DNA from: Macrostomum lignano
Lineage: Eukaryota
Length of the DNA stretch: 64,000 nucleotides
NCBI GenBank assembly: GCA_002269645.1
Contig: NIVC01002757.1
Coordinates: 79,040 to 143,039 of the forward strand
Direction of reading: 5' to 3'
Position 1 is the first letter of the stretch; every line of letters starts with the position of its first letter. The notes under the pieces are model-generated. The model did no database searches, was not told the origin of the DNA, and was given only the letters and a program-made list of their open reading frames with translations. Made by a program: the position numbers and the translations under genes. Shown here in pieces: positions 1 through 35,300 of this stretch.

Positions 1-1394
1 AAGTCTTTTTATAGAAAAAATATTCGAGAACAACAGCTTCCGCGTACGTGACAAAACGAAGATTTTTAATTTGTAGCTTAGCAAAGACAAACAAAGCAAA
101 ACGATTTAACTTTTTCCGGCGTTAACTGCGACAGAAGAACAGGTTCTGACATGCAATTAACAAGGACTGCTCAAGTAAAAGTACTTCATTATAACTCGAT
201 TGATATTCCTATAGAGCTTTTTGTTTAGAATAAAAAGGTCTCATTATATTAGGCGAGTATACGAGTATATATAGGCCATACTTATGAGAAAGCTTATACC
301 TAGTTGCTAGTTATGCCATTTTATGACTTTCCGACACAGGAAAAGTACGTAGGAGAGAAAATTAGCATAGAATCCTAATTTTCCTTAAAACAGCTCTTCG
401 AATATCAATAGAGTTATTATAAACGAAGCCACATCAGGAGATGCAGAAACATTGGGTCTGCCCTACTATCAAAGGCAATTATAAATTTTGCGCTGTAAAA
501 GATGGAAATCGCTATGATCTCCAAAATTTACTAATTGGTAATAATTGATAAAACTGATTGATTGCATCAGTAACTAAATTGAAACAATTTTGGCTAAAAA
601 AAATTAAAGTTAGCTAGAAAGCTTCAATAATGAAGACATTAAGGAGGTCAGGGAAACAACAAATCAGTTGACAACGCACATAAAACGTTTAATAAAGATG
701 AGAACGCGATATTGAGAAGGGATTTGAAAACGAAGCTCTTAAATCTCCAAAAAAATATAGAAAAAGCGTCTTCAACTGAAATTTTATCAAGTATGATCGA
801 GTGTTGAGTGCTAGCTAACTTCCTAAATCCTAACCCACAGAGGCATCAAGTCAGATTAACGCCCATCTCAAGTCTCGGGCACAATTAGCAATTCAAGACT
901 CCTCATGGGAACAGAAAAATCCTGGCGCCTAATCAGTGCGACATGAAAATCAATTCTAGATCTTATAGCTGACACTTTTTCAGGGGGGATATTTCAGCGC
1001 TTCTATAGTGGATTAAAAATTTTCATTCCAACACGAAATTAATTTGACACACAACAGACGGTTTGGTAAACGTGCGCTCGCGCTTACTACAAGTAGCATT
1101 TACAGGTAGCTAAAGTTATCTTGTATAAAAAATACAGTTTAAAGTATAAAAAATAAAGAGAATTTTATGACTCAATGGGTAAAAATTCTTAATATCCCAC
1201 TCTCCATTCAACCCGAATGCTTGGTAAGTAGTGTCGGTTTTGGGGGCGTTACAGCTTCTGTAGAAAGTATTTACATGTAACCAGGCTGATCAACAAGCCT
1301 ATAAGTTTCTATAAATCTAAATCTAAGAAGTATTAATTTAGCAACCAATTTTTCACCTATCTAAATATACCCTTTTTGCAGCATATATTGTTAT

Positions 1395-1560
1395 ACTGTA
1401 AAGAGACGAGAGAGGAGAGAGAGAGAGCAGATATGAGAGAAAAGAGATGAGATAAAAAGAAAATGGATAAAAGAGGAGAGAAGAGAGAGAATATAAGAGG
1501 ATAAATGAGATGAAAAAAGAAAATCCGAGAGGAAAGAGGAGAAAGGAGAGAAGTTTCAAA
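1395..1560. repeat. Purine-rich (GA-rich) low-complexity tract
   Basis: Near-pure A/G run; explains the spurious ORFs 1353-1586 and 1357-1569. Confidence 0.8.
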
Positions 1561-1977
1561 GAAGCCCACATGCTTAAGACAGACATTTAGAGAGATTCAT
1601 TCTGCGTGGCGGCACCCCAGCTGACCAGATCAATGCTTGGCTCAAATCTTAATTTAACACGAATTTACTCCATTTTTTTCAAACCTCTATCCTAAATATT
1701 GACAATTTTTGCTTGAGTATTAGTATGACTTCAAAATGAAGAATTTTTGCAAAAATAGGTCCGGGGATCGGAATTCTGCGGCTTCAAAATCCGCGGCTTT
1801 CAACAGCTTGTACTGTAATATGAAGCATGCACTTATTATTTATTCACCATTTTTTGTTAAACCAGGTGCCAAAACGCCCTACAATGCAAAACACTGGCTA
1901 GCTACAGCTAGCCTGGTCTAAAGCATCTCAAGTTTTATATATCGGTGCTTTTCGTTTACCGAGCTTACTTCAACGTT

Positions 1978-10021
<8,044 letters not shown>

Positions 10022-11281
10022 GACCACTGCGTCTCTGTGCGAGGTCTAATGACTTTATAGAGTGAGTGAAAGTGTCCGGAAGGAACCACTAAACCGGCTG
10101 CACGGATACTACGACAAAGGATGCGGCTTAACTTATCAGTAATAGATTTCTAGTCCTAAGAGCTCTCACCCCCTGCTCTGATCCGAATTGGCTGGCCGCA
10201 GAGCCGAAATCCCCCAGCCACTCAGCAATCATTAGTAATTGGGGGATAATTCCTGCCGTCTCCACCCCGCGTCCCCCTTCCAGTTTCCCTGCCGGGCCAC
10301 ACTCAGCAAATCAGCTTTGCAGAAAGAGAATGGCTGGTTACTATGGACGACAACAACGAATGAATGGTAAAAAAGAGACTGGAAGAGTGAATAGAGATGC
10401 GTAGAGGCAGACGCAGGGGGAGGTACTTGGCTTAGTGGAAGGACAAACCAGCTGAAGTGCCCGGGTGGCCTGCAGGTCTGACTCTCGCCCACACGCCCCA
10501 GCAGTAAGATTCTAAGCTTCTTTTGTGTCCGCGAACTGCAGCAGCTGTCTCCAGCGGCTGGGAGCAGCAGCAGTCGCTATTGTCACGGGTCGGGCCTGCA
10601 GCTGTGGAAAAAAGCATGCAGTCATACACAGCATTACATGTTTATCTGTCAGTCTTGCAGCTTTCGCCCCGCAGCGGTACCGCTATCTATTCGGCTATGG
10701 ATGCCACGCAAGGATGAACCCTTAGGCAGGGAATATCTCGATGAAAAAGTTGAGGCCCTCATGGAATCCTTGTAGAAAAGATCTTTACTATCTATAGTTT
10801 ACTTTTTTCGATTCATTCACATTGAGTCTTGAAAGGCTTTGTCAATTTTTTTGGCTTTGCGGGCTTTGTCTTCAAACATTGCTGGCTCCCATGGCAAAGA
10901 AATAACAAATAGACGACTACTTCGTTAATTCAGTATCGGAAATGTCTATTGAAATGTTCAACAACAGCATCGGCAGGGAGTAAGAGAGCATTTAAAATAA
11001 TCTATTTTTAAAATCACTCTTCAATTTGCGTTCAATTTTTCATTAAACAGAAAGCTCAATTAAGAGACCAATTTAAGTTTCGCTGGTCAGAAACAACCTT
11101 GCAAGCTCGTAAAAAAGTAGTCGATAAGTTGCTGCTCAACAAAATGACAGCATTAGGTTAGTAGTATATTTAGATTCAAATTTGTCGCTTAATTCAAATC
11201 TATAGGCGGAAGGCGTCTTGCATTGTCTAATGGAATAAAAACCTTTAAAATGCCATTACATTACAGCTGTGGAGCTATGTG

Positions 11282-11812
11282 ACTACGTAGCACGCAGAAA
11301 CTGCAGGGTTTTCAGATGTTTTGACGCAAAAAACGCAAATTATACTACTATCTGAAAATGAAGTAAGTAGTATATGAAAACGATATCCTAAGCGTGATAT
11401 ACTTTAATATGTACTCGTATATGTACATTAATCCATGTACTCATATGTGTACATTAATCCCATGTACTGCATTAATCCCTATCTATCTCAAATTGTATAT
11501 GTACATTGTCTACTTCCATGTCTATCCCAATTCTACATGTGTATTGTCAACTTGTACAGTCCTTCTATATGTACACTTGCGCATTAATCTACTTCTATGA
11601 CAATTTTTATATGTACAGTACATTATGTACATTAATCCCCAATCTACACGACGGCCCCCGCTCTGCGTATTTGAATCGTCAACCCCACAAGATTATATGT
11701 ACAACTCGAAACACTAATTGTTACGTGTACAGCACAGTATATGCGCAGAGGTGGGTCGGTGTGTGCGCGCCAACTGTACAATCTCACCTACTACCAAATG
11801 AGTCAACTAACA
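11282..11812 (+). repeat. Left terminal inverted repeat (outer ~117 bp near-perfect, inner part diverged)
   Basis: The first 77 bp are identical to the reverse complement of the right end, with few differences to ~11398. Patchy homology (GTACATTAAT sub-repeats; CTACTACCAAATGAGTCAACTAAC) continues to ~11812. Confidence 0.88.
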
Positions 11813-14605
11813 TTCAAGTTTTACAGAACACGTCATATATGCATATTTATATGTGAATTACTCAAAACCAAATGTAACTGATTACGCCATACTACCATTA
11901 GTAGAGTTTACAAGTCGAGATTCTTACTGAAAAAGATTACATTCATAATTTTACATTTTTATATTGAAAAAGCTGATATCATGTTTATTTTCAACTATTT
12001 TCAATAGTTGAAACAGAGAGCATGCAGAAGCGCCCACCCACCCAAATTATACCCAAAATTTGCAAAGCGGCCGCACATCCAAGAATTAACTCTTCATATT
12101 CCGCTGACCCTCAAAAAGCAAACAGTGTACGCAGAAACCGCCGCCCATCCCCAAAATTGGCGGAGGAGGTGCATGAGTTAGCCAAAAATTGCTGTCCACA
12201 CTGTTATATCCACTCCTTTTATACTTCATCCCTCTAGAATTCAGCCCTCGTCGCCACTCCGAGACAATTACGTCATTCCCAACCCCTCTCCCCGAGTCAA
12301 AAAAGTTTTCAAAAGACGTATATATATGATACGTATACGATTTATTTAGTCGGCCTCTAAATTCAAGACTGTGAAAGCAATGTTTTATATGCTTCGTATC
12401 ACAGTGCGGATGATACAAGACCCTTGTCGCACTTTATCCGCAAAATATGCCACTGACGCTGGTGTACACTATGGAATTAATTATGTTGCATGTTGAATCA
12501 CCCTTTATCTCCGGCCATATTCAAAATTCAACCCCAAGACTTGTTCGAAAACATCCACCCCTCAGCAGACCCCTATATAGCAAATCGAATTGAACCACTC
12601 GCCCCTGTTTCTCTCTGCACCCTTCTAAATGCCAAGGAATTTCGACCCCTCTCTCCATTTTCAGTGTACAAACAGATCTTTTCACAGCACGGACCCTATA
12701 TTAAACCTCATTCAGCAAAACCCCTCTTCTCCAATTACGTCATCCATGCCGCCCCAGTTAGCAAGAAACTAACTTTCAATGCACACATCAACCCCACGAA
12801 TCTGAGCAAATCCGAGTCAACCTCCAACTGCATCGACCCAATACCCCTGCATCTGTCAATGTACACAACCTATGAATCAGTGTATCCTCTGCATACAATT
12901 CCGAGACTGAATTCTATAGATGTGTTTTGTCAAAGAAATACTTTGGCACTATAACCAATGCGGTATACTAGAAGTAGTGAAGTCCACCCGCCCAAAAACG
13001 TGCTGCTATGTCAATTCTATCGCCTCCCCTACCTTCTCACTTCAAGCTTTCAGACTCTATGAAAGTTCGATCGCTCGAAGCAGGAATGAATCACCCACGG
13101 ACCTCTCCAAGTTGGAATTCCGTCCAAGTTTATTAAAAGCTAAATTAGTAGCTCGTAAAAAGCACATTTCATAAAAGGCGAGTTTTCTACAGTTTCTTTA
13201 ATTTTACCGTTTCAAGTTACACTTTGTTGATCAAAATCAGTAATTTCATCACTGGAAACCATAATTTCAACAGCTAATTTGCCCAAATGCCGTTTCAACT
13301 TTACTTGAGACGGCTTCGAAGCAAGAATGATCCCACACGGAAGTCCACAAGCCAGCCCAGCCTAAGAAATGGTTGATTAATGGTAAAAATTTATTAGAAA
13401 TGCAAACTTTTTCACGAAAACCACGAGTTTTCCTCATTTTTCGATTTTTAACGTTAAAATGCTTACTTTATGGATCGAAATCTGTCATTTTATCAATAGA
13501 AATCATAATTTTAGCTAATAAACCATCAAAAATGCTGTTTAATCATTCAAATAGGCATGTATATTGCCCAAGAAGCTGGGGAAATATTGTATAGACACTG
13601 TAAAAATTGGGGCTAAAAACACAGTCTGCTATTAAACTTAAAGTTTTCAGTGTTCGATTGATTTCGATTACTAAATCATGCCATTGATGCTATTTTAAAC
13701 GTTATTCTCAGTTCCGAAGCTCCCAACAGCCTCTTTTAGATGCACTGAATCCTGAATCAGTTTTGCTGCATACTTTGCATGTTGAATCACCCTTCAATTC
13801 AAAGATTCTCCACTACATACATTCTAGCCATATTCAAAATTCAACCCAGGACTATTAATGTTCGCCAATATGGAGAGAACAGCACAACACCTACCCCAGC
13901 CTCACCAAGGCAATTCTTTACTACCGCGTAAATGCCATAACTGACTCTCTGTCCCTATAACCCCAGGTCCATCCCTAAACATTACGTAAACAGAAGTAGA
14001 AAACTCTGTCTCTCTGTTTTGGCTTGTGACAGGGATCTCCGTCACTTCATTACTCTTTGTGGATATTTTAGATGATGGCAAGAGCTTTTCATCGACTATT
14101 ACTCTTCACCAAGCCTCTGTCAATCGGATGCTTTGCACACAAGCCCCATTTCACCAAGGTTATTAAATTGATACAGCGATTTTTAACAACCATTTTCTCG
14201 CAGAGACCGGCGGGCCTTAAAAACCACAGAAGTTATCTTTCATATTTTCATCTGTATTTAGCTATTATTGGTCCGCCAAGGTATTGTATTTTGAATAAAC
14301 ACCGTTTTCTATCAGATTTAAGTCGAAAAGACATGCTGCAAGAGGAAGCTGTCTTCCTAATTAAGAGACTGTACTCTGGCGGAGCAGCAGTTTCCACTCC
14401 TGCGAGAATGCTGGTTGGGTGGCTCCGCTCAGATCCAATAAAAAACCGCATGAGAAAAGAATTTATGGGGTATTTTCGACCCCAACTTTTCTATACCAAA
14501 TGCGGAACCGAGTGTACAATCGTACACTAATCTAGAAAATATAGACCCGGGAAAGAAAACCACGCACACCTCTCGTGCCCCTACCCCATCCTCCCTCTCG
14601 CGGGG

Positions 14606-14614
14606 TATATAAAG
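14606..14614 (+). promoter_or_regulatory. Candidate TATA box of the pPolB gene
   Basis: TATATAAAG in GC-rich context ~190 bp upstream of ATG 14800, followed by a CAG-rich putative 5' UTR. Confidence 0.55.
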
Positions 14615-14799
14615 CGGGTGAGAGCTGCTGCAGCCGCATCAGCAAAAGCAGCCAGCAGCAGAAGCCACAACAGCAGCATCACAGCTAGCAGCAACAGCAG
14701 AAGCAACGACAGCCACCAGCCCTCTGCCTCTAACATCAGCTGCAGCAGCATCATTAACATCACCAGCAGCATCAACAACCATCTACCTTCCCCATCGAA

Positions 14800-17700
14800 A
14801 TGGCATCGAAGCGCTCTGCTGCGGAAGCGGCTATTTCAGCCTTGTGGGGGCAGGCCGGCCCATCCAGGCAGCAACCGCAGCAACAACAGCAGCAGCATCA
14901 GCCTCCGGCAGCAAAGAGGGGACGACAGCTAGGTGAGTCTCTGCGCGCGTAAAACTATGCTTTTAGCATTTGCAAAATCTAAAATCAGAAAAATAGGGCT
15001 GTATAATTGCTTTAGCATTTGTGTGTGATTTGCAAACTTCACGCTTGTTGAAATATGGGCTTTCTTTGAAACCACAGCTTTCCATCTTTAACATTCATTT
15101 TGGCTTAAAATTTCTGTAATTGCTTTTCAGCTTTAGCATTTGTGTGATTTGCAAACTTAACGCTTGTTGAAATATGGGCTTTCTTTGAAGCCACATCTTT
15201 CCATCTTTAACATTCATTTTGGCTTAAAATTTCTGAATTTCCTCTTGACATAGATGTTGAAGTTGGATTTCTCAAATTCAGGCCTATTGAAATAACAGAG
15301 TTTTAGAGAATATCCGCAACAGCAGTATAGCCGGATAATGCCTGTAGAGGATAGTCATAAAATTTCTGGGGTTATGTGACTAGAGAAGCAAAAACAGCAA
15401 TCCTGTGGCGAGCGCGTGACTTAGCGGGGGGCGGGCAGGCGGCAGTGATAAAATCAACCCCCGATTTTTGGGCATGATTATGTAATCACCGCTGCAATTG
15501 ACAGTAGGGGTTTTGGCAGCAATAAAACTTGGCTGCTACAGTGAGGGTTATTAATCAGACAGCTTTAAAAATCCAAAAGCGGCCGCGCGGTATTGTTGCT
15601 AGGTGTCAAGGAGGTACAATGGAGGCACGTGCTGATAGGGGTTTTCTTAAATTTTACAATGGCTGCTGCGGCAGGATCAGTGTTATCAGGGTCATCAATC
15701 AAACATTTTTGACAGCCTAAAATTCGAAGCGGGGGTCAATCAACCCCACATTTCTTTTGTTGCTACGTGTCGGAACGTGCCGAGTTGGGGTTTTTACAAC
15801 TCGCCGATTTTTGTTGCTTGGGGTGGGGCGATAAAATTGCTGCTGCTGCAGGCAATCAATCAAAAGTTTTTGACAGTTGTAAAATTCCAAGCGGTCAGAA
15901 TTTTAGTCACCATGCGCATTTTTATTGCAGATTTGGCTCAATTTCAACCCCCACCCCAGCCCGACACTGTCGAAGGCGATGGTAAGGAGTTGATTTTATT
16001 TCATGAGTCATACACCCGCAGCCTCTCGCAATTCTAATTTCAAAACCCTCCATTTTTCAGGCTTTATTGCGCGTCTTGGCGGGGCAAAGGCCCTGCCAAA
16101 ATTTAAGGCAAAAGGGGTCGAATACGAGATAGTATTCACAAATTTGAGCGATATTCGCTCAACATTTGAGAAAATAATAGCAACCCTCTGCGCCGACCTG
16201 AATGCAGATGACTTCGTCGCATCTAAGCTGACGGCGGACAATATGATGCTCGCCATCAATGTCCCGCCCGTCCGCCGCAGCCGCTTCACTGCAGAGCTTG
16301 TCTTCAAGCATATCAACAAGGTGCTGCAGTCGGACTCCAGCGTCTTGGGCAACAACTTTAAATTGTTTTTGCTCAAGGCCTGGGTCCCGCGGGGCGGCTG
16401 CGGCAGCTTAGATGCGGCGGAGCGCCACATTCAGGCCAGGCATGCTATGGGCTATAATTATGTCATCATCGCCAACAGCGACAAGCGCTGTCTAATTCGA
16501 GCGCTGCTTGTCGCCAAGGCCTTTGCCGACCTGCAGGCCAAAGTCATCACGAGAACTACGTGGCAAACAATCAAGGCCGACTCCCCAATGCAGAAGAAGA
16601 TTACTGGAGAATTACAAATTACCGCCAAATTGTATTCGGTGAGTAAAAATGTTCTTGCGCATTTTAATTTGCATTTTTATTAATATACAAATGTTTTAGT
16701 CTTTATCAACCATCACACAGGCCGGGCCTTTCGGGGTTGACGTGCTCCCCCAACTGCTCGCCGCCATGAACGCTCAGTCGCCCGGCCGAGATTTCGGCGT
16801 CCGGGTGTACAGTGCCGAGGAGGGCAATACGTGCGTGTACGCCCTACCCGGCCGCGAAGTGCTGAATCTGCACCTAATTGGCGAACACTTTAACGCGGTG
16901 TGCAAGGTGCCGCCATTTTTCGGAGCCCGCCGCTATTGTGACCGCTGCCAGCAGCCGTATGATTGCAACTCTGGAGAGCACAAGTGCGCCAACACCTGCC
17001 CTCAATGCAAAGCGCCTGGCTCCAATTGCAAGAGCCTGCGGTGTGACTATAAGCGCTGCGCTGATTGTGGCCTCAAGTGCTACAATCAGCAGTGCTTCGA
17101 CAACCACCTTCGCAAGAACCGGGCTGGCCGGTCGCGCTGCAGCTCAACCCGTGTCTGCCCCAATTGCGGGTATTGCGAAGACCTGAAAGCCGGTCAAAAG
17201 GAGCCAGAGCACAAGTGCGGCCACATCAAATGCCCACTGTGTAAACAGTATGATGAGGCCGGCTCGCATTTGTGCTTCGTCAAGGCTCCTAAAGTGAAAG
17301 CATCGACTATGCCGTACGTGTTCTACGATACGGAAACATACACGGACGAGGAGAAGCAGCATCACGTGCATCTGGTGACTGCCGTCACGTGCTGCGAGAC
17401 CTGCTCCGGCCGGGCGTTTCCGCGCGAGACTTGCCGCCTCTGCAATGGCCTGCATAGCGCCGCCAATTGTCTGACTGGCCGCGATCTGGGGGAGGAATTC
17501 TCCAATTGCGTCAGCCACTCAGACTGCGCCTGCCAAATGGCCGATTTTGTGGCTGTGGGCCCGGCCTCGCTGAATGCTTTTTTCACCTGGCTGAGCACCA
17601 CATTCCGCGGCGGCGTCATTGTTGTCGCGCATAATGCATCAGGCTATGATGCGTTTCTACTGCTTGGCGCTCTGCTCAACGGCCTGGCCAAGAAGCGGCC

Positions 17701-20130
17701 CCAAGTACTGTTCCAGGGCAGCCGGCTAATGAGCATGACGGTTGACAAATTGGTATTCAAAGATTCGTTAAATTTTATACCAATCCCGCTTGCGCAATTC
17801 CCCAAAGCGCTGGGGCTCGCTGACACAAAGCTGGCCAAGGGGACGTTTCCCCACGAGTTCAACAAGCCGGCTAATTGGAACTACGTGGGCCCCTACCCGG
17901 CTATTGAATATTATGGCGGCAAAGCAAACAAGGACTATGACTCAATCTGTGCTTGGCTAGCCTCGCGACAGGGCGAGTTGTTCAACTTTAATCGGGAGTA
18001 TCTCGATTATTGTTTGAGCGACACAGTCCTGCTTCGCGAGGGCTGCATCAAGTACAGGGCAATAATTGGTGAAATTTGTGACGGCCTGGAACCATTTGTA
18101 CAGGCCAATACGATTGCCAGTTTGGCAATGGCCGTTTTCACCACCCGATTTATGGAGCCCAACTCGCTCGGCGTGATTGCCCGGCAGGCCGACCAGCAGT
18201 CATTCAAGGCGCGCAAGTGGCTGGCCTATTTGAATGCCACCGAATTTGGCGGGCGGCTGCGAACCTGCGACTCTACTGGCGGCGAGGCTGTCATTCTCGG
18301 CCGCAAGGTGGACGGCTTCGATGAGGCGAGCAACACTGTCTTGCAGTTTCATGGCTGTTTCTACCATGGCTGCGAGCAGTGCATGCCTGATCAGGATGCT
18401 GTCCACCCGCTCAAACGGCAGCCTCTGAGCCATATCCGCCACGAGACTGAGTGGTTCACTCGCGAGTTGGAGCGGCAAAACTACAGTGTTCGTACAATTT
18501 GGGAGCACGAATACGACACTGTATTGGCATCGCAGGCTGATTTCATTGCCGCAACTGCACATCTGCGCGCTCCACTCAAGATGGAAGATGCTCTCTACGG
18601 CGGCCGCGTAGAATGTTTTATCCCGCATGCTGTGGCCAGCGAGACTGAGACTCTCAAATATCGGGATGTGGTGAGTAGTGATACTACTAATATAGTAGAA
18701 TATTTTGCAAAAATACAGTTTATGAAAATAATGTTTTATTTCAACTTGCAGGTCTCTCTGTACCCGACGGTGCAGTCGAAAGACCCGTACCCGATTGGCC
18801 ACCCGGTGCAACATCCGACGCCGCAAGTGCTAGATTCTGACGCGCTGGCTAGTTACTTTGGTATTGCCAAAGTGACTGTGTTGCCGCCGTCAAATTTGCA
18901 CATTCCGCTGCTGCCCTACAGGGTGCAAAAGAAGCTCTTTTTTGGGCTTTGCCGCACCTGTATGGAGCAGCAGTGCGGCGACGATTGTGACCACTCAGAC
19001 GAGCAGCGGGCACTGACTGGTACCTGGGCAACGCCGGAGCTGCAAAAGGCCTTCCAGTTGGGCTACCGGCTGCAGGTGGTGCACGCGCTAGCCTACTGGA
19101 CAGAGAAGCGGACCGGTCTGTTCAGTGACTATGTCAGCACCTTCCTCAAATTGAAGGCTGAGTCGAGCGGCTCCCCCGGCATGTCGGATGAAGACAAGGC
19201 CGCCTATATTGCCGATTTCTTTGCAAAGGAGGGCGTCACGCTGGACAAGGTCGAGCCCAACCCCGGACTTCGCTTTGTAGCGAAAATCTTTTTGAATTCG
19301 TAAGTAATTATAAATTCTGTTTTTTAAACGATTTTCTTCTACTAATAGTAGCACTTCTTTTCACAACACACAGGCTCTGGGGCAAATTTTGTCAGCGTGA
19401 CGACCTGACATCGACAGAAATAGTATCCAGCTACGAGGACTGGCTCGCCTGGCTGACCGACCCCAACCTCAAAGTCAAGGCCTGCGAACCGATTGGCAGC
19501 GAGTTTATGCTGCTAGAGTACCGGCACCGCTACTTTAATCAGCGGCCCTTCCGGTACTCCAATGTGCCAATCGGTGTCTTTACGACCACGCAGGCCCGGC
19601 TGCGCCTGTACGAGGCATTGGAGGGGCTCGGCGAACGGGCCATTTACTGCGACACTGACTCGTAAGTAATGCATTGATAAATTATTTTAGAATTGAATAG
19701 TTGGCATGTGGAACTAATTATCTCTCTCCCCACACCCAGGGTCGTTTACCGGCATTCCGAGGGCCAATGGGAGCCGCCCCATGGCACGAGCCTCGGAATG
19801 TGGACCGACGAGGTGCCCGCAGGCAGCCGGATGACCGACTTTGTAAGTGGAGGGCCCAAGCTCTACACTTACATTGTCGAGGATGCGGCCGGAGTCCAGA
19901 GCCAAGTCCTGAAATGCAAGGGCATCCGCCTGACTCCGGAGATTCGGGAACGCAGCGACGAATTGCGCAGTGCCCTACTACACGGCGGCTCCCTGAAACT
20001 GCCGCAGTTTCAGTTCAGGCGCGACAAGGCGTCTTGCACCATACACACTGTTAGTATGGACAAGACGTTTCAGCGCGTCCTGACGAAACGCGTGTACGGG
20101 ACCTGCAGCAGGCCTTATGGCTATAAATAA
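14800..20130 (+). CDS. Protein-primed family B DNA polymerase (Polinton-type pPolB) with Cys-rich region and VSR-like insertion. Exons 14800-14932, 15931-15981, 16061-16638, 16721-18670, 18752-19299, 19374-19661, 19740-20130; about 1312 aa
   Basis: ExoI YVFYDTET, ExoII AHNASGYD, FKDSLNF..KGTFPHEFN, ExoIII YCLSD; spliced motif A DVVSLYP, motif B KIFLNSLWGKF, motif C YCDTDS; LGMWTDE, FVSGGPKLY, KCKGI. All six introns are GT-AG with matching phases; the joined CDS is 3939 nt with no internal stop. Exons 1-2 are less certain than exons 3-7. Confidence 0.9.
15009..15240 (+). repeat. Two tandem direct copies of ~112 bp in pPolB intron 1
   Basis: GCTTTAGCATTTGTG...GGCTTAAAATTTCTG at 15009-15121 and 15130-15240. 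Confidence 0.85.
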
Positions 20131-20509
20131 TGTATTCTAGTTGTGACTGACAATTCAATGTACATTTTGCAATATTAAATTAGTAAAATCTATTTATTGT
20201 ACATAATTTGCATTGTAATACTGCTGTATTTATCAGAATCTATTTGCTGTATATATATAATTCATGTACATAGAGCATTTTTGTATTGTGTGTGGCGAAA
20301 TTGCCAATGTAAAAATCTATTGTACATATTTTACATGTCAAACCTGTTTAAAATCATTTATGAAGAGAAAATTATTGAAAAAACAATGTAAAATTTTCTG
20401 TATATTCTATTTGCTGGTGATGGTGTACATGTCTCGATTCCTGTAATATGCTACTGATTAAATGTAAATATATCTTCATTGTAAATACTTATACATGATG
20501 TACGCTACA

Positions 20510-20979
20510 CTGTTAGTTGACTCATTTGGTAGTAGATGAGATTAGTAATTCTCGCCTCTGCGTACATGTAGTATTGTACATGTAATTTTGGTGCGCGCTC
20601 AGACCGTCTGGGGATGACACTGTACATGTAGAGTGTAGATTAATGCACATACTGTGTACATATAGAATTGGGGATAGACATGGACATTTGAGATATGGAT
20701 TAATGTACATGGAATTAATGTACATATCCAATTTGAGATATTTAGGGATTAATGTACATGGAATTAATGTACATATCCATTTTGAGATAGATAGGGATTA
20801 TTGAACATGGAATTAATGTACATATATGAGCACATGGATTATTACGACTACATATTGCCACATCACGCTTAGGATAGCGTTTTTGTATACTACTTACTTC
20901 ATTTTTCAGATAGTAGTATAATTTGCGTTTTTTGCGTCAAAACATCTGAAAACCCTGCAGTTTCTGCGTGCTACGTAGT
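20510..20979 (-). repeat. Right terminal inverted repeat
   Basis: Reverse complement of the left TIR; GTTAGTTGACTCATTTGGTAGTAG at ~20512-20535 marks the inner limit of visible homology. Confidence 0.88.
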
Positions 20980-20985
20980 TATGTG

Positions 20986-21252
20986 CACTCTGGCGCACTT
21001 TAAGCGACATTGTCTCACAACCGGCGAGAGGCATTACTGCCCATTCCACCGACTGCCCTTGAGCAGTCATACGCACAGGCACACACTCACACAGGAGTTT
21101 ACAGCGGCCCTGACTTTATTTATCGTTAGCTAGCCATGTACACTTTACTGTGCCTTGGGGTTGACCCCCAAGGGCGTCAATTTGCACGAGCAGAGCCAAG
21201 CCGAAATTCCAATTTAGGCCCAAATTAATGCGACTGCCACTTGGGATCGAGC
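20986..21252 (-). mobile_element. Dispersed ~280-bp repeat, copy 3, abutting the right TSD of the pPolB element
   Basis: Reverse complement of the family at 7508 and 25663. Confidence 0.8.
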
Positions 21253-21304
21253 CCGATGTTATACTTTCGGATATCCGTATCTTGTGTTATCCGCCCAGAT
21301 AGTA

Positions 21305-21487
21305 CAAGTGCTTTCTGATCTCCCCCTGGACATTGCAAGTGCTTTCTGATCTCCCCCTGGACATTGCAAGTGCTTTCTGATCTCCCCCTGGACATTGCAA
21401 GTGCTTTCTGATCTCCCCCTGGACATTGCAAGTGCTTTCTGATCTCCACCTGGACATTGCAAGTGCTTTCTGATCTCCATCTGGACA
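21305..21487. repeat. 31-bp tandem repeat, about 6 copies (CAAGTGCTTTCTGATCTCCCCCTGGACATTG)
   Basis: Units start at 21305, 21336, 21367 and onward. Confidence 0.92.
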
Positions 21488-23517: not shown

Positions 23518-25155
23518 ATGACTGACGACCAGCGGGTGTTCGGAGACGGCAGCGCTACAAGCCGAAGCAGAGTGTGCACATTTCACTATCTGGTGGGTAG
23601 CTCACAGCAGAAGCAGCCGCAACAATTGGAAAGTCAGCAGCAGCAGCAACAACAGCCGCAGCAGCAGCATTCTGACGCGCTAAGGATGCCTTCCAACCGA
23701 GACATGCCCTCTTTCGAGGAGTGGAAACGCCGTCGAGCCAATCGTCCGTTCGGTCAAGAAGTTGTGCTGCTTGAGCTCGATCCCAAGGAGGAGCTGGCCA
23801 GAAAAAAGCAACGAGACCAGCGCTTGATGTCGCTGATGCAACCGGAGGAGCAAGAAAGGTTCTACACCTACCTGGATCATTACGACCGACTGCAGGCTAA
23901 AGTTGAGCGCGACCGTGAAGAACGCGAGCGGGCAAAAGCCGAAGCCGCCAGGGAGGCCTCTGCAAAGGCGGCGGCGCGGAAAAAGGAGCAGCACAAACTG
24001 CACAAGCGTCTAGACAAGGTGGACCTCGCCACCGACTCGCAGTTCGTCGCCGACGTAGCCAAATCAAAGTACTACCGGCTGGTGCAGCGCGAGCAGAAAC
24101 AGCAGTTTAGATCGCGCGACGATCACGACCAATTCTGGTTGGGCGAGCTTCAAACCAAAGGACTGCTGCGGCCTACGGAGACGTCGGCGCTTGGACGACG
24201 GCAGCGCAGACACATGACTGGTGCCGCCGGTGCCGGTTCGGGTGCACACTCTGCAGCTGGAGATGATCTGCTACAAGCGGACGATCAAGAGTTGCATCCC
24301 ACGTTGCACTGGGAAAGAACGGACGATACGCTCCAGCTGGGCGCGAGCCGAAACGCTGCTGGTGCTCGCAGCGGCGGCGGCTTTCATAGCATGTCGCGCG
24401 CTCAGCAGAACCGCATGCTCGAGGAGCTATTCCCACGAGCTGAGCGGCCCAAGCTCAGCAGCTTTAACGTTGACTTCACCAAGAAAGAGGAAAAATCGGC
24501 CGACGAATTGGAACTTGAACGCCTGAAGGAGCGCCGACGCAAGCGGCTGGACGAGTGGCGCGAGCATCGGCACATGCAGCAGATGGCTGTCACGTTCGGT
24601 GTAGCCACTCGACGCATTCTGGACGAGCGACCAGTCCGCGATTCCGCCGATCGGCTCATGGACGAGGCCGAGGCGGACCTTGGCCAGCTGTTCGGCGGAG
24701 CGCTCGAGAGGGCTCGCCGTCGGGAGCAGCTCGAGTTGGAGTCACGACGAGGGGGCGACGGCGAGCTTGACCTGACAGATCCCCGCCTACTGCAATCGTG
24801 GCGTCGGAATCCGGCCGGAGAGCGACGACGAAAACAGCTGCGCGGCGTCGACGGAAGCTCGTCAACGTCGACTTTCTCCAGCGCCCAGCGCCCAGGCGAG
24901 CGGCCGCTGACAACGCCGGCAACGGAGACCTACAACGACGATGACGACTACGACGAAGCGGGCTATCACGATCGGCGAAGGACTCAACGACCGATGCTTT
25001 CGTTGGCTGACGCGCACAAAGAGCTGCCGCACATCGAGGTCAAAGGTCAGAGCACCCTGTGGAACAATTACATGGGCGCCGGCAATGTTCGCTTTGCTCC
25101 GCTCGATGATGACGCCTGGTATCGAGAGGCGACAACAGCTGCGGTCACCAGCTAG
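23518..25155 (+). CDS. Uncharacterised charged, coiled-coil-rich protein, 545 aa, single ORF
   Basis: Long GC-rich ORF with polyQ and E/R/K-rich helices and AT-rich flanks. No recognised domain; the true start may lie in an upstream exon. Confidence 0.75.
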   Translation: MTDDQRVFGDGSATSRSRVCTFHYLVGSSQQKQPQQLESQQQQQQQPQQQHSDALRMPSNRDMPSFEEWKRRRANRPFGQEVVLLELDPKEELARKKQRDQRLMSLMQPEEQERFYTYLDHYDRLQAKVERDREERERAKAEAAREASAKAAARKKEQHKLHKRLDKVDLATDSQFVADVAKSKYYRLVQREQKQQFRSRDDHDQFWLGELQTKGLLRPTETSALGRRQRRHMTGAAGAGSGAHSAAGDDLLQADDQELHPTLHWERTDDTLQLGASRNAAGARSGGGFHSMSRAQQNRMLEELFPRAERPKLSSFNVDFTKKEEKSADELELERLKERRRKRLDEWREHRHMQQMAVTFGVATRRILDERPVRDSADRLMDEAEADLGQLFGGALERARRREQLELESRRGGDGELDLTDPRLLQSWRRNPAGERRRKQLRGVDGSSSTSTFSSAQRPGERPLTTPATETYNDDDDYDEAGYHDRRRTQRPMLSLADAHKELPHIEVKGQSTLWNNYMGAGNVRFAPLDDDAWYREATTAAVTS

Positions 25156-25662: not shown

Positions 25663-25870
25663 GCTCGATTCCAAGTGCAGTCGCGTTAATTTGGGGCACA
25701 ATTGGAATCTCGTGCAATTAATGGTCTTGAGGACCAACCCCCAAGGCGCAGTGAAGTGTACATGCCTAACGATAAATTAAGTCCGGGCCTCTGTACATTC
25801 CTGTGTGAGTGTGTGCCTGTGCGTATGTCTGCTCAGGGGGAGTCGGCGGGATGGGCAGTAATGCCTCTCG
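25663..25870 (+). mobile_element. Dispersed ~280-bp repeat, copy 2 (3'-truncated)
   Basis: Homologous to 7508-7790. Confidence 0.8.
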
Positions 25871-25967
25871 ACGCGCGGTTTTATAACAATGCTTGACAGC
25901 TTGACAATGAGCTTTATTAAGAAAATAGAGTGCTAATTCGAATTCGAATTTACATGATAAAGAGGGC

Positions 25968-27026
25968 TCAAGGCAAAGCGCTGAAAAAGTTGTTAATCTG
26001 TTTCTCATTCATGCTGAAATTGGCGATAGCCACAGCAGAAACAACGCCTATTAAATGGGCAGTGTGTCCAGCATAGAAGCGACGGCCGATCGAAACAGCA
26101 AAACACGAAGGAGATCCGCCGAGAACTGCCGACCCAACTGCAGAGGGTACAATAAACCCTTTGTTATAAAATAGGGCAGATTCTGCAGTGTAAGAAACGG
26201 TAGCAGAAAACGCCACGTCCATCCAGGTGTTTTCATCTAAAGATAGCAGTCCGACTGCAGATTTTACGTAGTAATAGTTCCTTGCATTAAAATAGAGTTG
26301 GCCTGCTTGACTGTATTCCCACAGATGAGGACCGAAAGTTATGCTGACAGGATCGGAGCAAGACACCGCCTCTATGAACGGCTGGACCCTTGGCTTTCTC
26401 TTCAGCCGCATCAGCCAAGTGAACCCGCCAGCAAAGGCGGCTCCAGAGAAGCGACTGTCGTTGAGCAGCGCATATGAGGACACCCCGTCGAACACGGCGC
26501 CCTCTTCGGTCCACTGCAGGTTCCCACTTTCCAGTCGATGGCTGCTGCCGCTGCTTCCCGGAGCATCGCCCTGGCACGCCAGGTTGCCAAATCGGTGTCC
26601 GCCTCCAGCCAGCCACAGACCCAGTAGTCGGTCGTGCACCGAGGTATCGCAGTTTGTCAACGATTTGGTTCGAAACACATAACACTGCGCCGCTTCTTGC
26701 TTGCTGCTCAGCACCTGGTCAGTGCCAATTAGCTGGGCTTCAACTGACTGCAGGACGCGGCACACGCGCTGGTAGTGGAAGAGCGAGCACGCACCTGTCT
26801 GCCTGTCCCACTGCAGGACGAGGTCGTCATCAGAATGGCCGGTGCTCGACGCTTTGAGCATGCAGCTTTGCAGGTTTTGGGATTGCCACGAACTCAGAGA
26901 GGAGCTCTCGTTGATGCACAGCGGTGAGAAGTATTTGCACCACTGTTTAGCGCAGTCAACAGCCGATAGTAACGGCCATGCGCTAACTAGCAGCATGGCG
27001 AATCGAATTCTGGCTATTAGACACAT
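25968..27026 (-). CDS. Putative secreted protein with a Cys-containing N-terminal region and a C-terminal LamG-like (concanavalin A-like) domain
   Basis: Hydrophobic leader (M)LLVSAWPLLSAVDC; GAVFDGVSSY...FTWLMRL...NTWMDVAFS...GVVSAVAIANFSMNEKQI resembles a LamG_3/pentraxin-type pattern. Start is uncertain (ATG at 27074, 27026 or 26996). Confidence 0.7.
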   Translation of the reverse strand: MCLIARIRFAMLLVSAWPLLSAVDCAKQWCKYFSPLCINESSSLSSWQSQNLQSCMLKASSTGHSDDDLVLQWDRQTGACSLFHYQRVCRVLQSVEAQLIGTDQVLSSKQEAAQCYVFRTKSLTNCDTSVHDRLLGLWLAGGGHRFGNLACQGDAPGSSGSSHRLESGNLQWTEEGAVFDGVSSYALLNDSRFSGAAFAGGFTWLMRLKRKPRVQPFIEAVSCSDPVSITFGPHLWEYSQAGQLYFNARNYYYVKSAVGLLSLDENTWMDVAFSATVSYTAESALFYNKGFIVPSAVGSAVLGGSPSCFAVSIGRRFYAGHTAHLIGVVSAVAIANFSMNEKQINNFFSALP

Positions 27027-27574
27027 TGTCGTCGAACTTGACAACCGTTCTATAGCTTTGAGATGTCGTATCATGCAAATTTTCTCTTTAATTTTTTTGC
27101 TGTTTTTCACGCTATTAAAGATAATTGGGAATCAGCGTGACTGACAAGCATTTTTTATTTGCAGATGCCAGCTGTGACAATTCCCAAGCCATTATCAAAC
27201 TGAAAGCTCTTATGTGTTTCTGGCTTCTGAATTTTAATCAAAAGAAAAAGAGAAGAGAAGAGATGTCTTCAACAAGAGGCATGCTATTTGAATTCTCATG
27301 AATTGGCGTGAATTAAGCCAGCTGACAGGCTGTTTCGAAGCATATGCATATTGATGAAGCTTTTCTTTATCCATTCAAATATAATTTACCTTAGGAAATG
27401 CTTTCGTTCGTTCAAATTAAAAGCTAGATACAGTATAATGGTTTTACTTAGGAAATGTACATTGTTTAGCGCAGGGGTCGGCACTCCGGCCCGCGAAGCC
27501 TCTCTATCCGGCCCTCGGGTTCTTTGAAACTTCAAAATAGCAATTCGGCCCGCTAAAGGTTTGTGGCTCTCACA

Positions 27575-28549: not shown

Positions 28550-30193
28550 CTAATTATAAGCCAACTTCAGAAGGACCAACCGGTTTCTATTAGAAGTGAA
28601 GGCCAACCACCTCGCGTTGTCTTTTTCAACCAGCTCCAGACGTTCAATATGGCCACAAAGTCCAGTCTCCTTGACAGGAAGCTCAAACGAGTCAACAAAA
28701 ACATCATCGCCAGTTGAGATGACAATTTCATTGCCGGTCAATTTAACAATGAAGCCTTTGCTATCAATGGCCAGCCTCCTAACTCTCGCTGCCGCGTCAA
28801 CGGGTTCGTCGTCATCGTCGGAGTCTTTGTCCGGCAGCGAACTGATGGCTTGGCCAGTGATGCCGCAGATTTTCAGCACAGATTCAAGAACGCCCCAGTT
28901 AAACAGCAGCAATTTGCTGCCGACAAGAGCTAGATCGGTGAAGAAAATTCCTTTATCGTGAAGAGGCCACAAGTCAATCACTGACAGCAATTCAGAAGAG
29001 TCTTTGTCGATAGAAAAAACGCACTGCTTTGCCAAATCAAGGAAGCAAAGCTTGTCAGAATTGCCCGCAATGGCGTCGAACGATCTACTGACGCCGTCAA
29101 AGCTGCTGCCACTGATCACTTTGACCAAACCGCCGCTAAGGTCAGTCACAGTTACAGTGCTGCGATGCGCCACAAACAACTGCTGACGGTTGCTGTCACA
29201 GTGCAGCCCAGTGACTTTACCTGACGTCGAGCTGAAATTGCACCCGACATTGAAAACTTTTTTATGCTCCGCTGAAAACGCCACAATGTTCAGCTTGTCG
29301 TCGTTTTGTCTTTCGAAAAATACGCACGGTGCGCCAAGAGGTTTAATGTTGCCGCGGCCAGTGCAATCAGCTGATCGCTTTACAAAACCGACCGAATTGA
29401 CTACAAAGCCAGCTGTGTTGCTACAGGCTGCCAAGAACTTCGGCTCAGACTGAAGATTCACCTGAAACACTTGATTGGATGAAACAGGCGTGATATCAAG
29501 ATCATCGTTATCGTCACCGCTATCGTCCAAATCAAGCCAGCAGTCGGTCATCACGCTGGTCATATGGTCGTCAATTGTAGACTGGAACTGTTGTACTCCA
29601 GCGGCCACGTCGCCAAACGACCTTAGCCGCATCTCGGCTCTAGGACCAGCGTCGATGTAGTCACGCTGAAACCCTCGAAGTTCGTTTCGCTTGTTATTAA
29701 AATCTTTGCATCGTTTAGAAGCGTCTACAAGCCAGGCGCTGTTTTTCTTGGATAGCTCCGCCAACTTTTTCATCTCCTGGGCGGCCAGGGCGAGCGAGGC
29801 CTCCTTCTCGCGTGACTCAGCTTCGTCAGCGTCTGTCAGCCTCTCTGCCACCGATTGGTGCACCAACTGCAGTCGGTCCACCGTTTTCTGGCGCCACTGC
29901 TGCAATTTTTCCTGTACAGCGTTGAACATTTCGTTGACTTCCTGCACCTCGACGGTAAGAGCCTGCAGTTCCTTCGTCATCTTTGCTCGTTGTTTTGCTA
30001 CGGGAACTAGCTGTCTCATTTTCCACGATACATCAGCTGCTTGCTTGCGCACTGTCTCGGACTCCTTATCCAGGTGCTCCTGGCAAAGAACTTTATTGTT
30101 ACCGAGTAAGCCAACTTCTACTGATGGATTGTCGCAAGATTTGACGCTGCAAGTTTCGCGTAGTTTTTTTATTGCTTCTCCACGGCGTGGCAT
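28550..30193 (-). CDS. Degenerate B-box-like Zn motif + coiled coil + probable beta-propeller (TRIM/NHL-like architecture, no RING), 547 aa, intronless
   Basis: CSVKSC...LCQEHL, then a heptad-rich helical region, an acidic linker and repeated beta-strand motifs (GLHCDSNRQQLFVA, RLAIDSKGFIV). The ORF is solid; the domain call is inferred. Confidence 0.7.
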   Translation of the reverse strand: MPRRGEAIKKLRETCSVKSCDNPSVEVGLLGNNKVLCQEHLDKESETVRKQAADVSWKMRQLVPVAKQRAKMTKELQALTVEVQEVNEMFNAVQEKLQQWRQKTVDRLQLVHQSVAERLTDADEAESREKEASLALAAQEMKKLAELSKKNSAWLVDASKRCKDFNNKRNELRGFQRDYIDAGPRAEMRLRSFGDVAAGVQQFQSTIDDHMTSVMTDCWLDLDDSGDDNDDLDITPVSSNQVFQVNLQSEPKFLAACSNTAGFVVNSVGFVKRSADCTGRGNIKPLGAPCVFFERQNDDKLNIVAFSAEHKKVFNVGCNFSSTSGKVTGLHCDSNRQQLFVAHRSTVTVTDLSGGLVKVISGSSFDGVSRSFDAIAGNSDKLCFLDLAKQCVFSIDKDSSELLSVIDLWPLHDKGIFFTDLALVGSKLLLFNWGVLESVLKICGITGQAISSLPDKDSDDDDEPVDAAARVRRLAIDSKGFIVKLTGNEIVISTGDDVFVDSFELPVKETGLCGHIERLELVEKDNARWLAFTSNRNRLVLLKLAYN

Positions 30194-32358: not shown

Positions 32359-35300
32359 TCAATGATCGTCATTAAGCATCTGCTTCATCAGCAACTGCTG
32401 GTCCTGGTAACAGCGAGAACACAGGAAATTGGTCTCCTCTCGAGCGAACATGTCGCAGTTCGGGCCGACACACTGCATCAGAGCCGAACGGCGCATTTGT
32501 TGGTCGATAATTTCGGCAGACCGGCGCTTCTGTAATTCGTCTAATTGTGAGAACCGAGCCATAGCCGAGGTCAGGTAGCTGCTAACTGCGTCAGTGAAAT
32601 GTGGCGGTCGATTAGTAACGCCCAGGTGGGCGCATAGCAACCCGGTTGAGGCGCTATCCAGTAGCGCCTGGTCCGCCACCGAGGAGGCATCAGCTGGTGA
32701 AGTTGGCGTTGCAACCGACGGCCATTTACTAGATTTACCTGTTCGCCTAATTGGTAGACGCTGCTGCATGGCTTTGAGCAGTTGATGGCCAAGAGATCGG
32801 CTCGGGTTCTGTTGGCCCTGCGACTGGGAAACAAGGACGGGAGGGGTAGGTGTTAGTACGATAAACTAGTACTAGTATAACATGATCCACTACGTTACAC
32901 TGTTACACTACATGTTACAGTAGATGTTACACTATACTTTACAGTAGCTCTTACACTATATGTTACAGTAGCTGTTACACTATATGTTACAGTAGCTGTT
33001 GCACTGTATGTTACAGTAGCTGTTACACTATATGTTACAGTAGCTGTTGCACTGTATGTTACAGTAGCTGTTACACTATATGTTACAGTAGCTGTTACAC
33101 TGTATGTTACAGTAGCTGTTACACTGTATGTTACAGTAGCTGTTACACTGTATGTTACAGTAGCTGTTACACTACATGTTACAGTAGCTGTTACACTACA
33201 TGTTACAGTAGCTGTTACACTATATGTTACAGTAGCTGTTACACTACATGTTACAGTAGCTGTTACACTACATGTTACAGTAGCTGTTACACTACATGTT
33301 ACAGTAGCTGTTACACTACATGTTACAGTAGCTGTTACACTATATGTTACAGTAGCTGTTACACTACATGTTACAGCAGCTGTTACAGCATCTGTTACAC
33401 TATATGTTACAGTAGCTGTTACACTACATGTTACAGTAGCTGTTACACTACATGTTACAGTAGCTGTTACACTACATGTTACAGTAGATGTTACACTACA
33501 TGTTACAGTAGCTGTTACACTACATGTTACAGTAGCTGTTACACTATATGTTACAGTAGCTGTTACACTACATGTTACAGTAGCTGTTACACTACATGTT
33601 ACAGTAGCTGTTACACTACATGTTACAGCATCTGTTACACTACATGTTACAGCATCTGTTACACTACATGTTACAGCATCTGTTACACTACATGTTACAG
33701 CATCTGTTACACTACATGTTACAGCATCTGTTACACTACATGTTACAGCATCTGTTACACTATACTTTACAGTAGCTGTTACACTACATGTTACAGCATC
33801 TGTTACACTACATGTTACAGCATCTGTTACACAACATGTTACAGCAGCTCACCATGCCCCCTGGATACAATCCATCAACACCGCCGCGCATTCTACGACA
33901 GTCGAGAGTAGCAGATCTCTGCTGCAACTGCGAATGCAACTGTTGTTGCTGCTGCTGCTGTTGATACTCAACAAAGCCGCTATCGTCTGCTGAAACAGCA
34001 CCGACTGTTGCCATAGACAACTGCGCCGCATTGCCAACTGAACTACCCGAACGAGTTAGTCCAACTACTACTGGGCGTTGAGTAACAGCAGCAACGGCAG
34101 CCTGAGCGACAGCCGCCGGAAGCGGCTGCGGCGGAGCCACAGGCAATCTCAGAGTTGAGCATCTCAGATAAGAAGCCAGCAGTTTAGCTCGAAGCCTGCC
34201 GCCCATTTCTGTATCGGGCGTCGCCACTGGAGCGTCGTTAACAACAGCCGCAGCGGCAGATTTCGACGACCATTTCCAGTGCGGCCCGGGATCGGCACTA
34301 AAGTGCAGAGGCAGCGGGGTGTGCAGATCGCAGCAGCACAATGGAACAGCGTAGGGCAAGTTTACAGCAGTTTCCATGGGAACCAATGCGGAGAAATGAG
34401 CTGCATCGTAGGCTAGCAATACCGGATGCTTAGAACAATGCTCTGGTTTCTCTAACAGCGGCAGATAGATTCCGGCAAACGGTATTGGAGCTAAATTGTC
34501 ACCTTCGGAGTCTTTGACAAACTGATCGGCTATCACTATGATGGGCCGGCGGAATACATTGGCGGCTACGAATACGTGGATTTCTTCTAGAGAATCCAGC
34601 TGATGCTGATGCTGCTGACCGATCTGCTGCTGTTGTTGCTGCTTAGGCTGGGCGCTAGCCAGTTGTAGCAACGATTTCCATTCCGATTGCCATTCCGACT
34701 CGCTTAATCTCAGGCCCGTGGCTCGGTACAGCTCCCGGGCTGTCTGCCATCTCCAGCGCCTGTACACAGCTGCACTATGAGACAGCAAATATTCGTGCAA
34801 CGCGCTTCGGAATACCAATTGACGATCGTGGAAGCCTAGACTGCTCAGACTGATAGCATGTAGAAGGCAGTTGCCATCGCCGCTCGTTTGCAGAGGCCAC
34901 AATCGTTGGGACAGGCCAAGGTCGTGCCTAGGTATTAGTGTGAGGACTTACGCGTCAGCTGCTTGTACTCTAAGCATATTAAATCTCTAGTCTACCTTCA
35001 GGAAACTGGTAACAATGTCAGGCTACATCCCTAGTTTACATTCAGGAAACTGGTAACAATGTCAGGCTACATCCCTAGTTTACCATTAGGAAACTGGTAA
35101 CAATGTCAGGCTACATCCCTAGTTTACCATTAGGAAACTGGTAACAATGTCAGGCTATATCCCTAGTTTACCATTAGGAAACTGGTAACAATGTCAGGCT
35201 ATATCCCTAGTTTACCATTAGGAAACTGGTAACAATGTCAGGCTACATCCCTAGTTTACCATTAGGAAACTGGTAACAATGTCAGGCTACATCCCTAGTT

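Follow-up and report, generated by a model that had tools for sequence, protein, structure and literature searches.

A stretch of 64,000 nucleotides from Macrostomum lignano (contig NIVC01002757.1 of assembly GCA_002269645.1, positions 79,040 to 143,039 of the forward strand; hereafter the window, to which all positions refer) carries an element of 9,698 bp at 11282-20979 that is bounded by terminal inverted repeats (TIRs), flanked by a perfect 6-bp target-site duplication (TSD) and equipped with an intact gene for a protein-primed DNA polymerase (pPolB). The element encodes no detectable integrase, ATPase, protease or capsid. We consider it probable that it is a non-autonomous derivative, formed by internal deletion or replacement, of a Polinton with an OTU-bearing pPolB of the 'Alpha' class, and that an integrase acting in trans inserted it. 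Descriptions of Polintons, also called Mavericks, usually concern either virus-like elements of 15-20 kb that are complete or decayed fossils. In the present copy, perfect hallmarks of insertion stand together with the shedding of the integration, packaging and capsid genes and with an intact replicase bearing host-style introns, which makes the element a clean example of reduction. An earlier note, made from the sequence alone, had described an element of this size with TIRs and the perfect TSD TATGTG, which was confirmed by reading the sequence and aligning the inverted repeats; its further claims that the element derives from a Polinton and lacks the four functions named above were borne out, the former by the probable OTU-pPolB of 'Alpha' type, the 6-bp TSD and the TIRs, the latter by six-frame Pfam, protein-cluster and tblastn searches that all came back empty.

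The hexamer TATGTG abuts the outermost TIR base at both ends, matching at 6 of 6 positions, and because the TSD positions are fixed by the TIR ends, the probability of such a match by chance is 1/4096. A TSD of 6 bp is a hallmark of Polintons. The TIR cores (11282-11358 and 20903-20979) are 77 nt long and 100% complementary; the next 44 nt inward match at 93% (as far as ~117 nt), gapped homology of ~85-90% reaches out to ~240 nt, and an isolated inverted match of 33 nt (11780-11812 and 20511-20543) lies ~500 nt inside each end. The terminal sequence begins 5'-ACTACGTAGCACG..., the element starting with 5'-ACTACG and ending with CGTAGT-3', that is, 5'-AC...GT-3'. Judging from the perfect TSD and the identity of the outer TIRs, the insertion would be recent, and recent mobility, which had previously been proposed on the same grounds, is plausible. 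Ten copies of the 14-mer ATGTACATTAATCC (at most 2 mismatches) were counted in the window, against 0.61 expected by chance, and all ten are confined to the two subterminal regions in inverted orientation, three on the left (+) and seven on the right (-), where a 49-bp tandem array is also present (20691-20825). These subterminal 14-mers are candidate protein-binding sites. The parts of the element are as follows.

11276-11281, no strand: left copy of the TSD, TATGTG, read directly and the same as 20980-20985.
11282-11358, + strand: left TIR core, 77 nt, starting 5'-ACTACGTAGCACGCAG, with weaker TIR homology on to ~11521.
11399-11650, + strand: left subterminal region, in which the 14-mer occurs 3 times by motif count; tandem structure was found.
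11651-15715, no strand: spacer of ~4.1 kb without detectable coding capacity in Pfam, protein-cluster, tblastn and Rfam searches.
15716-20130, + strand: intact pPolB gene, from the Pfam match, tblastn of paralogue models and inspection of junctions.
20131-20902, - strand: right subterminal region, 3' untranslated and AT-rich, with 7 copies of the 14-mer (20637-20823).
20903-20979, - strand: right TIR core, 77 nt, ending ...CTGCGTGCTACGTAGT-3'.
20980-20985, no strand: right copy of the TSD, TATGTG, read directly.

The open reading frame (ORF) at 16742-19303 (853 aa) matches the Pfam family DNA_pol_B_2 (PF03175, 9.7e-28). The complete gene model was obtained by tblastn of annotated paralogue models onto the window and inspection of the splice junctions, and comprises six coding exons (15912-15981, 16061-16638, 16721-18670, 18752-19299, 19374-19661 and 19740-20130, stop included) separated by five introns, all of them GT-AG, 74-82 nt long and of lower GC content (0.25-0.39) than the exons (0.56). 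The product amounts to 1,274 codons from the ATG at 15912 with no stops, each exon being open in its own phase, as checked exon by exon without assembling the spliced sequence. Of the conserved columns in a 29-sequence alignment, 42 could be mapped onto the window copy, which retains every one of them. An AG acceptor is located at 15714-15715, three annotated paralogue models start without a methionine exactly at 15717, and the first in-frame ATG, at 15912, is the start of a fourth paralogue model; we infer that 15716 marks a splice or trans-splice acceptor and 15912 the start codon, with room left for an additional upstream coding exon. An intact pPolB of ~1312 aa and ~2.7 kb of spare DNA had been described in the earlier note. 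The intactness stands, but the length is revised to the 1,274 codons above, and homology to the paralogues starts at 15717, not at ~14.6 kb. Because it starts there, the spare DNA on the left amounts to 4.3 kb (11399-15715), to which ~0.85 kb on the right is added.

Three of the introns coincide with polymerase motifs: intron 3 immediately precedes motif A (SLYPT), intron 4 cuts motif B between KIFLNS and LWGKF, and intron 5 cuts motif C between YCDTD and S, these introns (18671-18751, 19300-19373 and 19662-19739) sitting exactly at or inside the catalytic motifs. By eye, the introns differ from one another and are not apparent copies of one intron-generating element. Because pPolB carries host-like introns, a long germline residence of the lineage is pointed to.

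The domains of the product were delimited with a profile built from 29 homologues and searched against the PDB sequences. The profile matched phi29 DNA polymerase (1.9e-13), three PDB chains of the Vsr / DNA mismatch endonuclease (E=0.004-0.005, profile positions 723-787) and the OTU1 ubiquitin thioesterase over nearly the whole domain (E=0.021). The OTU and Vsr domains were found with the 29-sequence profile only, single-sequence Pfam and PDB searches detecting neither. A putative OTU domain, the trait of the PolB 'Alpha' class, is suggested by the OTU1 match together with an invariant Cys in DKRC (16480-16491) and an invariant His in GEHFN (16880-16894), both seen in two alignments; for the Vsr-like insert, a relative (P0055) gave a weak match to Pfam MTES_1575. 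The exonuclease motifs I-III and the polymerase motifs A-C are all present. A search with the predicted AlphaFold structure of exon 3 (pLDDT 79.8) returned the phi29 DNA polymerase fold (1.4e-4), followed by the TREX1/2 exonucleases; with the whole chain it returned the exonuclease fold only, which dominated the search, and it spoke neither for nor against the Vsr-like insert, while exon 3 lacks the Cys half of the OTU-like domain. The domains run along the gene in the following order.

16400-16900, + strand, approximate bounds: OTU-like cysteine-protease domain, profile E=0.021, split by intron 2.
16937-17242, + strand: Cys/His-rich zinc-finger-like cluster, from invariant or near-invariant columns and weak zinc-finger profile matches.
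17321-18022, + strand: 3'-5' exonuclease domain with FYDTET (17321), HNASGYD (17630) and YCLSD (18008).
18308-18514, + strand: Vsr-like endonuclease insert, flanked by the exonuclease and polymerase domains, with GCFYHGC (18353) and WEHEY (18500).
18752-20127, + strand: polymerase palm, fingers and thumb, from the motifs and the profile match to phi29 polymerase.

The combination of OTU with pfam03175 defines the 'Alpha' adintovirus/Polinton PolB class (PMC8502044), and a VSR insert marks the pPolB2 subgroup of marine nematode and mollusc Polintons (PMC10748475); both domains have therefore been described elsewhere and are not new. A host OTU gene in the window (33808-34902) was considered as kin of the polymerase's OTU-like domain and ruled out, BLASTP showing no relation.

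Extensive searches of the spare DNA were all negative. A six-frame Pfam scan of 11359-15722 gave no match at E<=1, rve, Cas1 and other transposases included, and ORF pieces of at least 40 aa from the spacer found no homologue among 5.8e9 protein clusters, a database that includes ~40 annotated polymerase copies from the M. lignano proteome. Likewise, tblastn of 29 genes that neighbour related polymerases at the loci L001, L002, L004, L006 and L007, among them integrase, ATPase and major capsid protein (MCP) genes, detected nothing in the element, and the integrases of L002 and L006 matched nowhere in the window, while the genes of L006 and L007 do detect their counterparts in another locus, L008, by tblastn (up to 2e-112). 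An Rfam scan of the element returned no family and only a sub-threshold histone stem-loop. The N-terminal extensions of the longer paralogue models (P0006, P0010, P0013 and P0007) matched neither the window nor Polinton accessory genes. The spacer searches would miss decayed remnants at ~30% identity. The largest spacer ORFs, at 12490-12954 and 14072-14530, are 152-154 aa long, in agreement with the upper limit of 154 aa given before. The left part (11399-15715) has a GC content of ~0.41, against 0.56 in the pPolB exons, and its + strand is C-rich; its sole GC-rich patch (14600-15000) consists of CAG/GCA low complexity (14618-14932), a 119-bp tandem duplication occupies 15009-15246, and the left spacer has no match elsewhere in the window. 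Within the reach of these tests, 11399-15715 is non-coding.

Among the relatives outside Macrostomum, which come from a firefly, probably a fish, and metagenomes, those with sufficient flank (L002, L006, L007 and L008) are ordinary Polintons, the measured ones ~15-18 kb long, which on the side of the relatives agrees with a simple deletion derivative, a case that the earlier note had listed against its own proposal. L006 (assembly GCA_977065575.1), probably from a fish and with an integrase 67% identical to that of a minnow adintovirus, is ~18 kb long with TIRs of ~1 kb, the TSD GATGCA and AG...CT termini, and encodes pPolB in one continuous ORF, an A32-like ATPase, an MCP-like protein and rve. 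L008, from Photinus pyralis, measures ~15.6 kb, has AG...CT termini and TIRs of ~0.9 kb full of short repeats, and carries MCP, integrase and ATPase genes, the 3' end of its pPolB adjoining the right TIR. In L002 pPolB stands directly beside rve, and L007 combines pPolB with MCP-like and penton-like genes. The 7-mer TTAATCC was noticed both inside the Macrostomum 14-mer and in the short-repeat arrays of the L008 TIRs (L008:300-1000 and 14780-15750), which may be due to chance or to a common protein-binding core. Within Macrostomum, 40 cluster representatives bear the annotation 'DNA-directed DNA polymerase, Macrostomum lignano'; 8 of the 40 are 80-96% identical to the polymerase of the element, against at most ~32% for the closest polymerase outside the genus. 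Because there are ~40 pPolB clusters, eight of them this similar, the host genome would appear to carry a diverse, partly young Polinton population, which could supply the integrase.

By its published definition a Polinton combines pPolB with an rve integrase (PMC5499653), and since the latter is absent, the element is not an autonomous Polinton. It has in common with Polintons a pPolB (PF03175), the 6-bp TSD and TIRs within the range of ~100-1000 bp, and lacks the rve integrase, the ATPase, the protease, the capsid genes and AG...CT termini. A 6-bp TSD at an element without an integrase of its own therefore implies an integrase acting in trans, as had been suggested from the outset. The ancestor would have been a Polinton of ~15-18 kb with the order TIR, capsid/protease/integrase/ATPase module, pPolB, TIR, from which the whole left module was lost or replaced, while the right half, pPolB followed by the TIR, would keep the layout of an L008-type Polinton. 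What remained would be both TIRs with the subterminal 14-mers, ~4.3 kb of non-coding DNA and pPolB with its 3' end toward the right TIR. A retrovirus-like (rve) integrase from an autonomous relative would recognise the common termini and make a 6-bp staggered cut, giving rise to TATGTG. The pPolB mRNA would probably have its 5' end at the acceptor 15715, possibly through trans-splicing, and the polymerase, if expressed, could replicate the element, starting from the TIR ends by protein priming. The intactness of pPolB would reflect youth and/or the advantage of a replicase in cis.

Several observations weigh against derivation from a Polinton by deletion or replacement. An autonomous partner with the same termini was seen neither in the window, where no second copy of the TIR or of pPolB was found, nor among viral contigs searched with a TIR 27-mer. 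When the integrases of L006 and L002 were used in a profile search, no Macrostomum integrase appeared among the best 120 of 3,075 matches, all 120 being fish-like or metagenomic. No decayed remnant of the missing genes was detected in the left 4.3 kb, which makes deletion indistinguishable from replacement or an independent origin. Large duplicated segments are present in the M. lignano genome, and near-identical paralogue models thus need not be separate insertions; they could be duplicated genome segments instead of transposed copies. Finally, the termini read AC...GT, whereas those of L006, L008 and the vertebrate Mavericks (PMC8097293) read 5'-AG...CT-3'. AG...CT termini may, however, not be universal across the superfamily.

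It is conceivable, though on balance unlikely, that the element belongs to a dedicated, propagating polymerase-only lineage, that is, a semi-autonomous Polinton satellite which keeps its own replicase under selection and borrows the integrase and any capsid; in the extreme form of this idea, integration may even proceed through the polymerase's own Vsr-like nuclease. The 3.8-kb coding sequence is intact across five introns with 42 of 42 mapped columns kept while all else is gone, and in the eight paralogue clusters at 80-96% the similarity takes in even the 5' leader, from 15717 on; yet a young deletion copy would be equally intact, and the family is unevenly conserved, since a number of the paralogue models are shorter or lose register locally. 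The closest non-Macrostomum polymerase, a single ORF of 1301 aa at L001 (JGI metagenome 3300047562, 1-8667), adds to the case, since its 8.7-kb contig contains no Polinton accessory gene either. However, no TIR was found in the 2.7 kb upstream and 2 kb downstream of that polymerase, and L001 may be another 'solo' polymerase locus or a mere fragment.

We regard it as improbable that the left 4.3 kb holds one or more unrecognised genes, such as one for an integrase or a structural protein that has diverged strongly or is heavily spliced. The host genes in the window do have short exons and introns, and the two ORFs of 152-154 aa and the GC-richer patch at 14600-15000 could be taken as traces of coding sequence, but against this stand the empty six-frame Pfam scan, the lack of homologues among the protein clusters and of tblastn matches from the relatives' accessory genes, the GC content below that of the pPolB exons and the low-complexity nature of the patch.

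A small probability is also left for an unrelated cut-and-paste TIR transposon with a 6-bp TSD that captured a Polinton polymerase in the manner of a Pack-type element, because the termini are AC...GT and not the AG...CT of L006, L008 and the vertebrate Mavericks; in that case the ends would not be of Polinton origin. The long non-coding interior and the arrays of short repeats near the ends, both common among non-autonomous DNA transposons, fit such a capture. Against it, the length of the TSD is that of Polintons, the place and orientation of pPolB by the right TIR and the repeat-filled TIRs match the full Polinton L008, and the six-frame Pfam scan revealed no transposase of another superfamily in the element.

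That the element is autonomous through a single protein, its Vsr-like endonuclease making the staggered cut in the target and its polymerase priming or joining there without any need for an integrase, is very improbable: the insert is there with its conserved residues and an integrase is not, but we know of no precedent for Vsr-type nucleases making 6-bp TSDs. Moreover, Vsr or HNH inserts also occur in the polymerases of integrase-bearing Polintons (PMC10748475; L002), and because those carry an integrase as well, the insert would have another role in Polintons.

Compared with known systems, the derivative of an 'Alpha' Polinton that we favour shares with Polintons, Mavericks and 'Alpha' adintoviruses a pPolB with a putative OTU-like N-terminus and the 6-bp TSD, and with full Polintons TIRs of hundreds of nt containing short-repeat arrays, as well as the 3' end of pPolB beside the TIR as in L008. 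It differs from full Polintons in size (9.7 kb against 15-18 kb), in the missing integrase, ATPase, protease and capsid, in its AC...GT ends and in its five spliceosomal introns, pPolB being one ORF in L006 and intact vertebrate Mavericks being reported to lack introns (PMC8097293). The VSR-bearing pPolB2 of the marine nematode Trissonchulus and of molluscs likewise has a Vsr-like insert that separates the exonuclease from the polymerase domain but, in contrast to the present gene, sits in full Polintons (Jeong et al. 2023, PMC10748475). In Bidnaviridae and 'bidnaparvoviruses', an OTU-PolB of Polinton origin is encoded by a short linear genome whose termini are inverted (PMC8502044). The element resembles Bidnaviridae as a short unit (6-9 kb) with inverted termini whose main gene is a putative OTU-PolB of Polinton type, the rest of the Polinton set being gone, but it is chromosomal with a TSD, has introns and lacks a parvovirus-like capsid, NS1 and PLA2. 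A PLA2 ORF of parvovirus type (PF08398, L004:7807-8181) was found beside an OTU-type pPolB on the metagenomic contig L004, a pairing that agrees with the published 'bidnaparvovirus' hybrid type; this ORF had no match in the element, and the spacer had no Pfam match.

Non-autonomous derivatives of the Ac/Ds type keep the termini and the TSD length of their superfamily, have lost the integration enzyme and are mobilised in trans. The element is like them in its TSD length and its missing integration enzyme and, presumably, in its retained termini and its mobilisation in trans, and unlike them in that it is not non-coding and retains a large intact replicase gene. Linear mitochondrial and cytoplasmic plasmids are TIR-bounded and carry a pPolB of another clade, are extrachromosomal without a TSD and usually encode an RNA polymerase; they too are small TIR-bounded units around a protein-primed polymerase, but the element is integrated in a chromosome with a TSD. 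Casposons, in which a Cas1 integrase stands beside PolB and the TSD measures 14-15 bp, were rejected, no Cas1 Pfam match being found, the TSD having 6 bp and the host being eukaryotic.

Macrostomum is a model for regeneration and the germline with a repeat-rich genome, and our literature search retrieved no paper describing Polintons or Mavericks in it. The locus provides an annotation of exons, domains and ends for a family of ~40 entries labelled only 'DNA-directed DNA polymerase'. If further copies share its layout, the replication and integration functions would be divisible between partner elements. If the idea of a replicase-only satellite should prove true, the element would represent a class of life-style new to the self-synthesizing elements of eukaryotes, and a living counterpart of a step proposed for the origin of bidnaviruses.

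On the right flank, a dispersed repeat of ~270 bp (20986-21253) begins within a few bases of the right TSD and has inverted copies at 7507-7783 and 25663-25873. These copies were considered as a paralogous empty site and dismissed, as their homology sets in close to the TSD and the left flank has no second copy; they provide no empty-site evidence. An inverted pair of 108 nt with 90% identity (21022-21129 and 25766-25873, 4.6 kb apart) encloses an ORF of 545 aa (23518-25155) without a Pfam match and may constitute another TIR element, and a tandem repeat with a 62-bp unit occupies 21282-21487. A satellite array with a 16-bp unit, of which ~100 copies were detected, extends from 3809 to ~5900, and G strongly exceeds C across 4-7 kb of the window. 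Two further ORFs, at 28550-30193 (-, 547 aa) and 25968-27110 (-, 380 aa), belong to no Pfam family.

A host-type OTU cysteine-protease ORF (PF02338, 6e-15) and, after it, an ORF with an A20-type zinc finger cover 32359-34902 (-), with a second OTU-domain ORF at 48518-48937 (+), 14 kb off. The inverted repeats 42936-43051 and 53356-53471 (116 nt, 89%, 10.3 kb apart) enclose a piggyBac-type transposase fragment (DDE_Tnp_1_7, 1.4e-5) at 51625-52149 and possibly bound another large TIR element. Finally, an intronless ORF of 561 aa at 60065-61750 (-) matches a protein kinase domain (1.6e-63) and, below threshold, a POLO box, and is a putative polo-like kinase gene or retrocopy.

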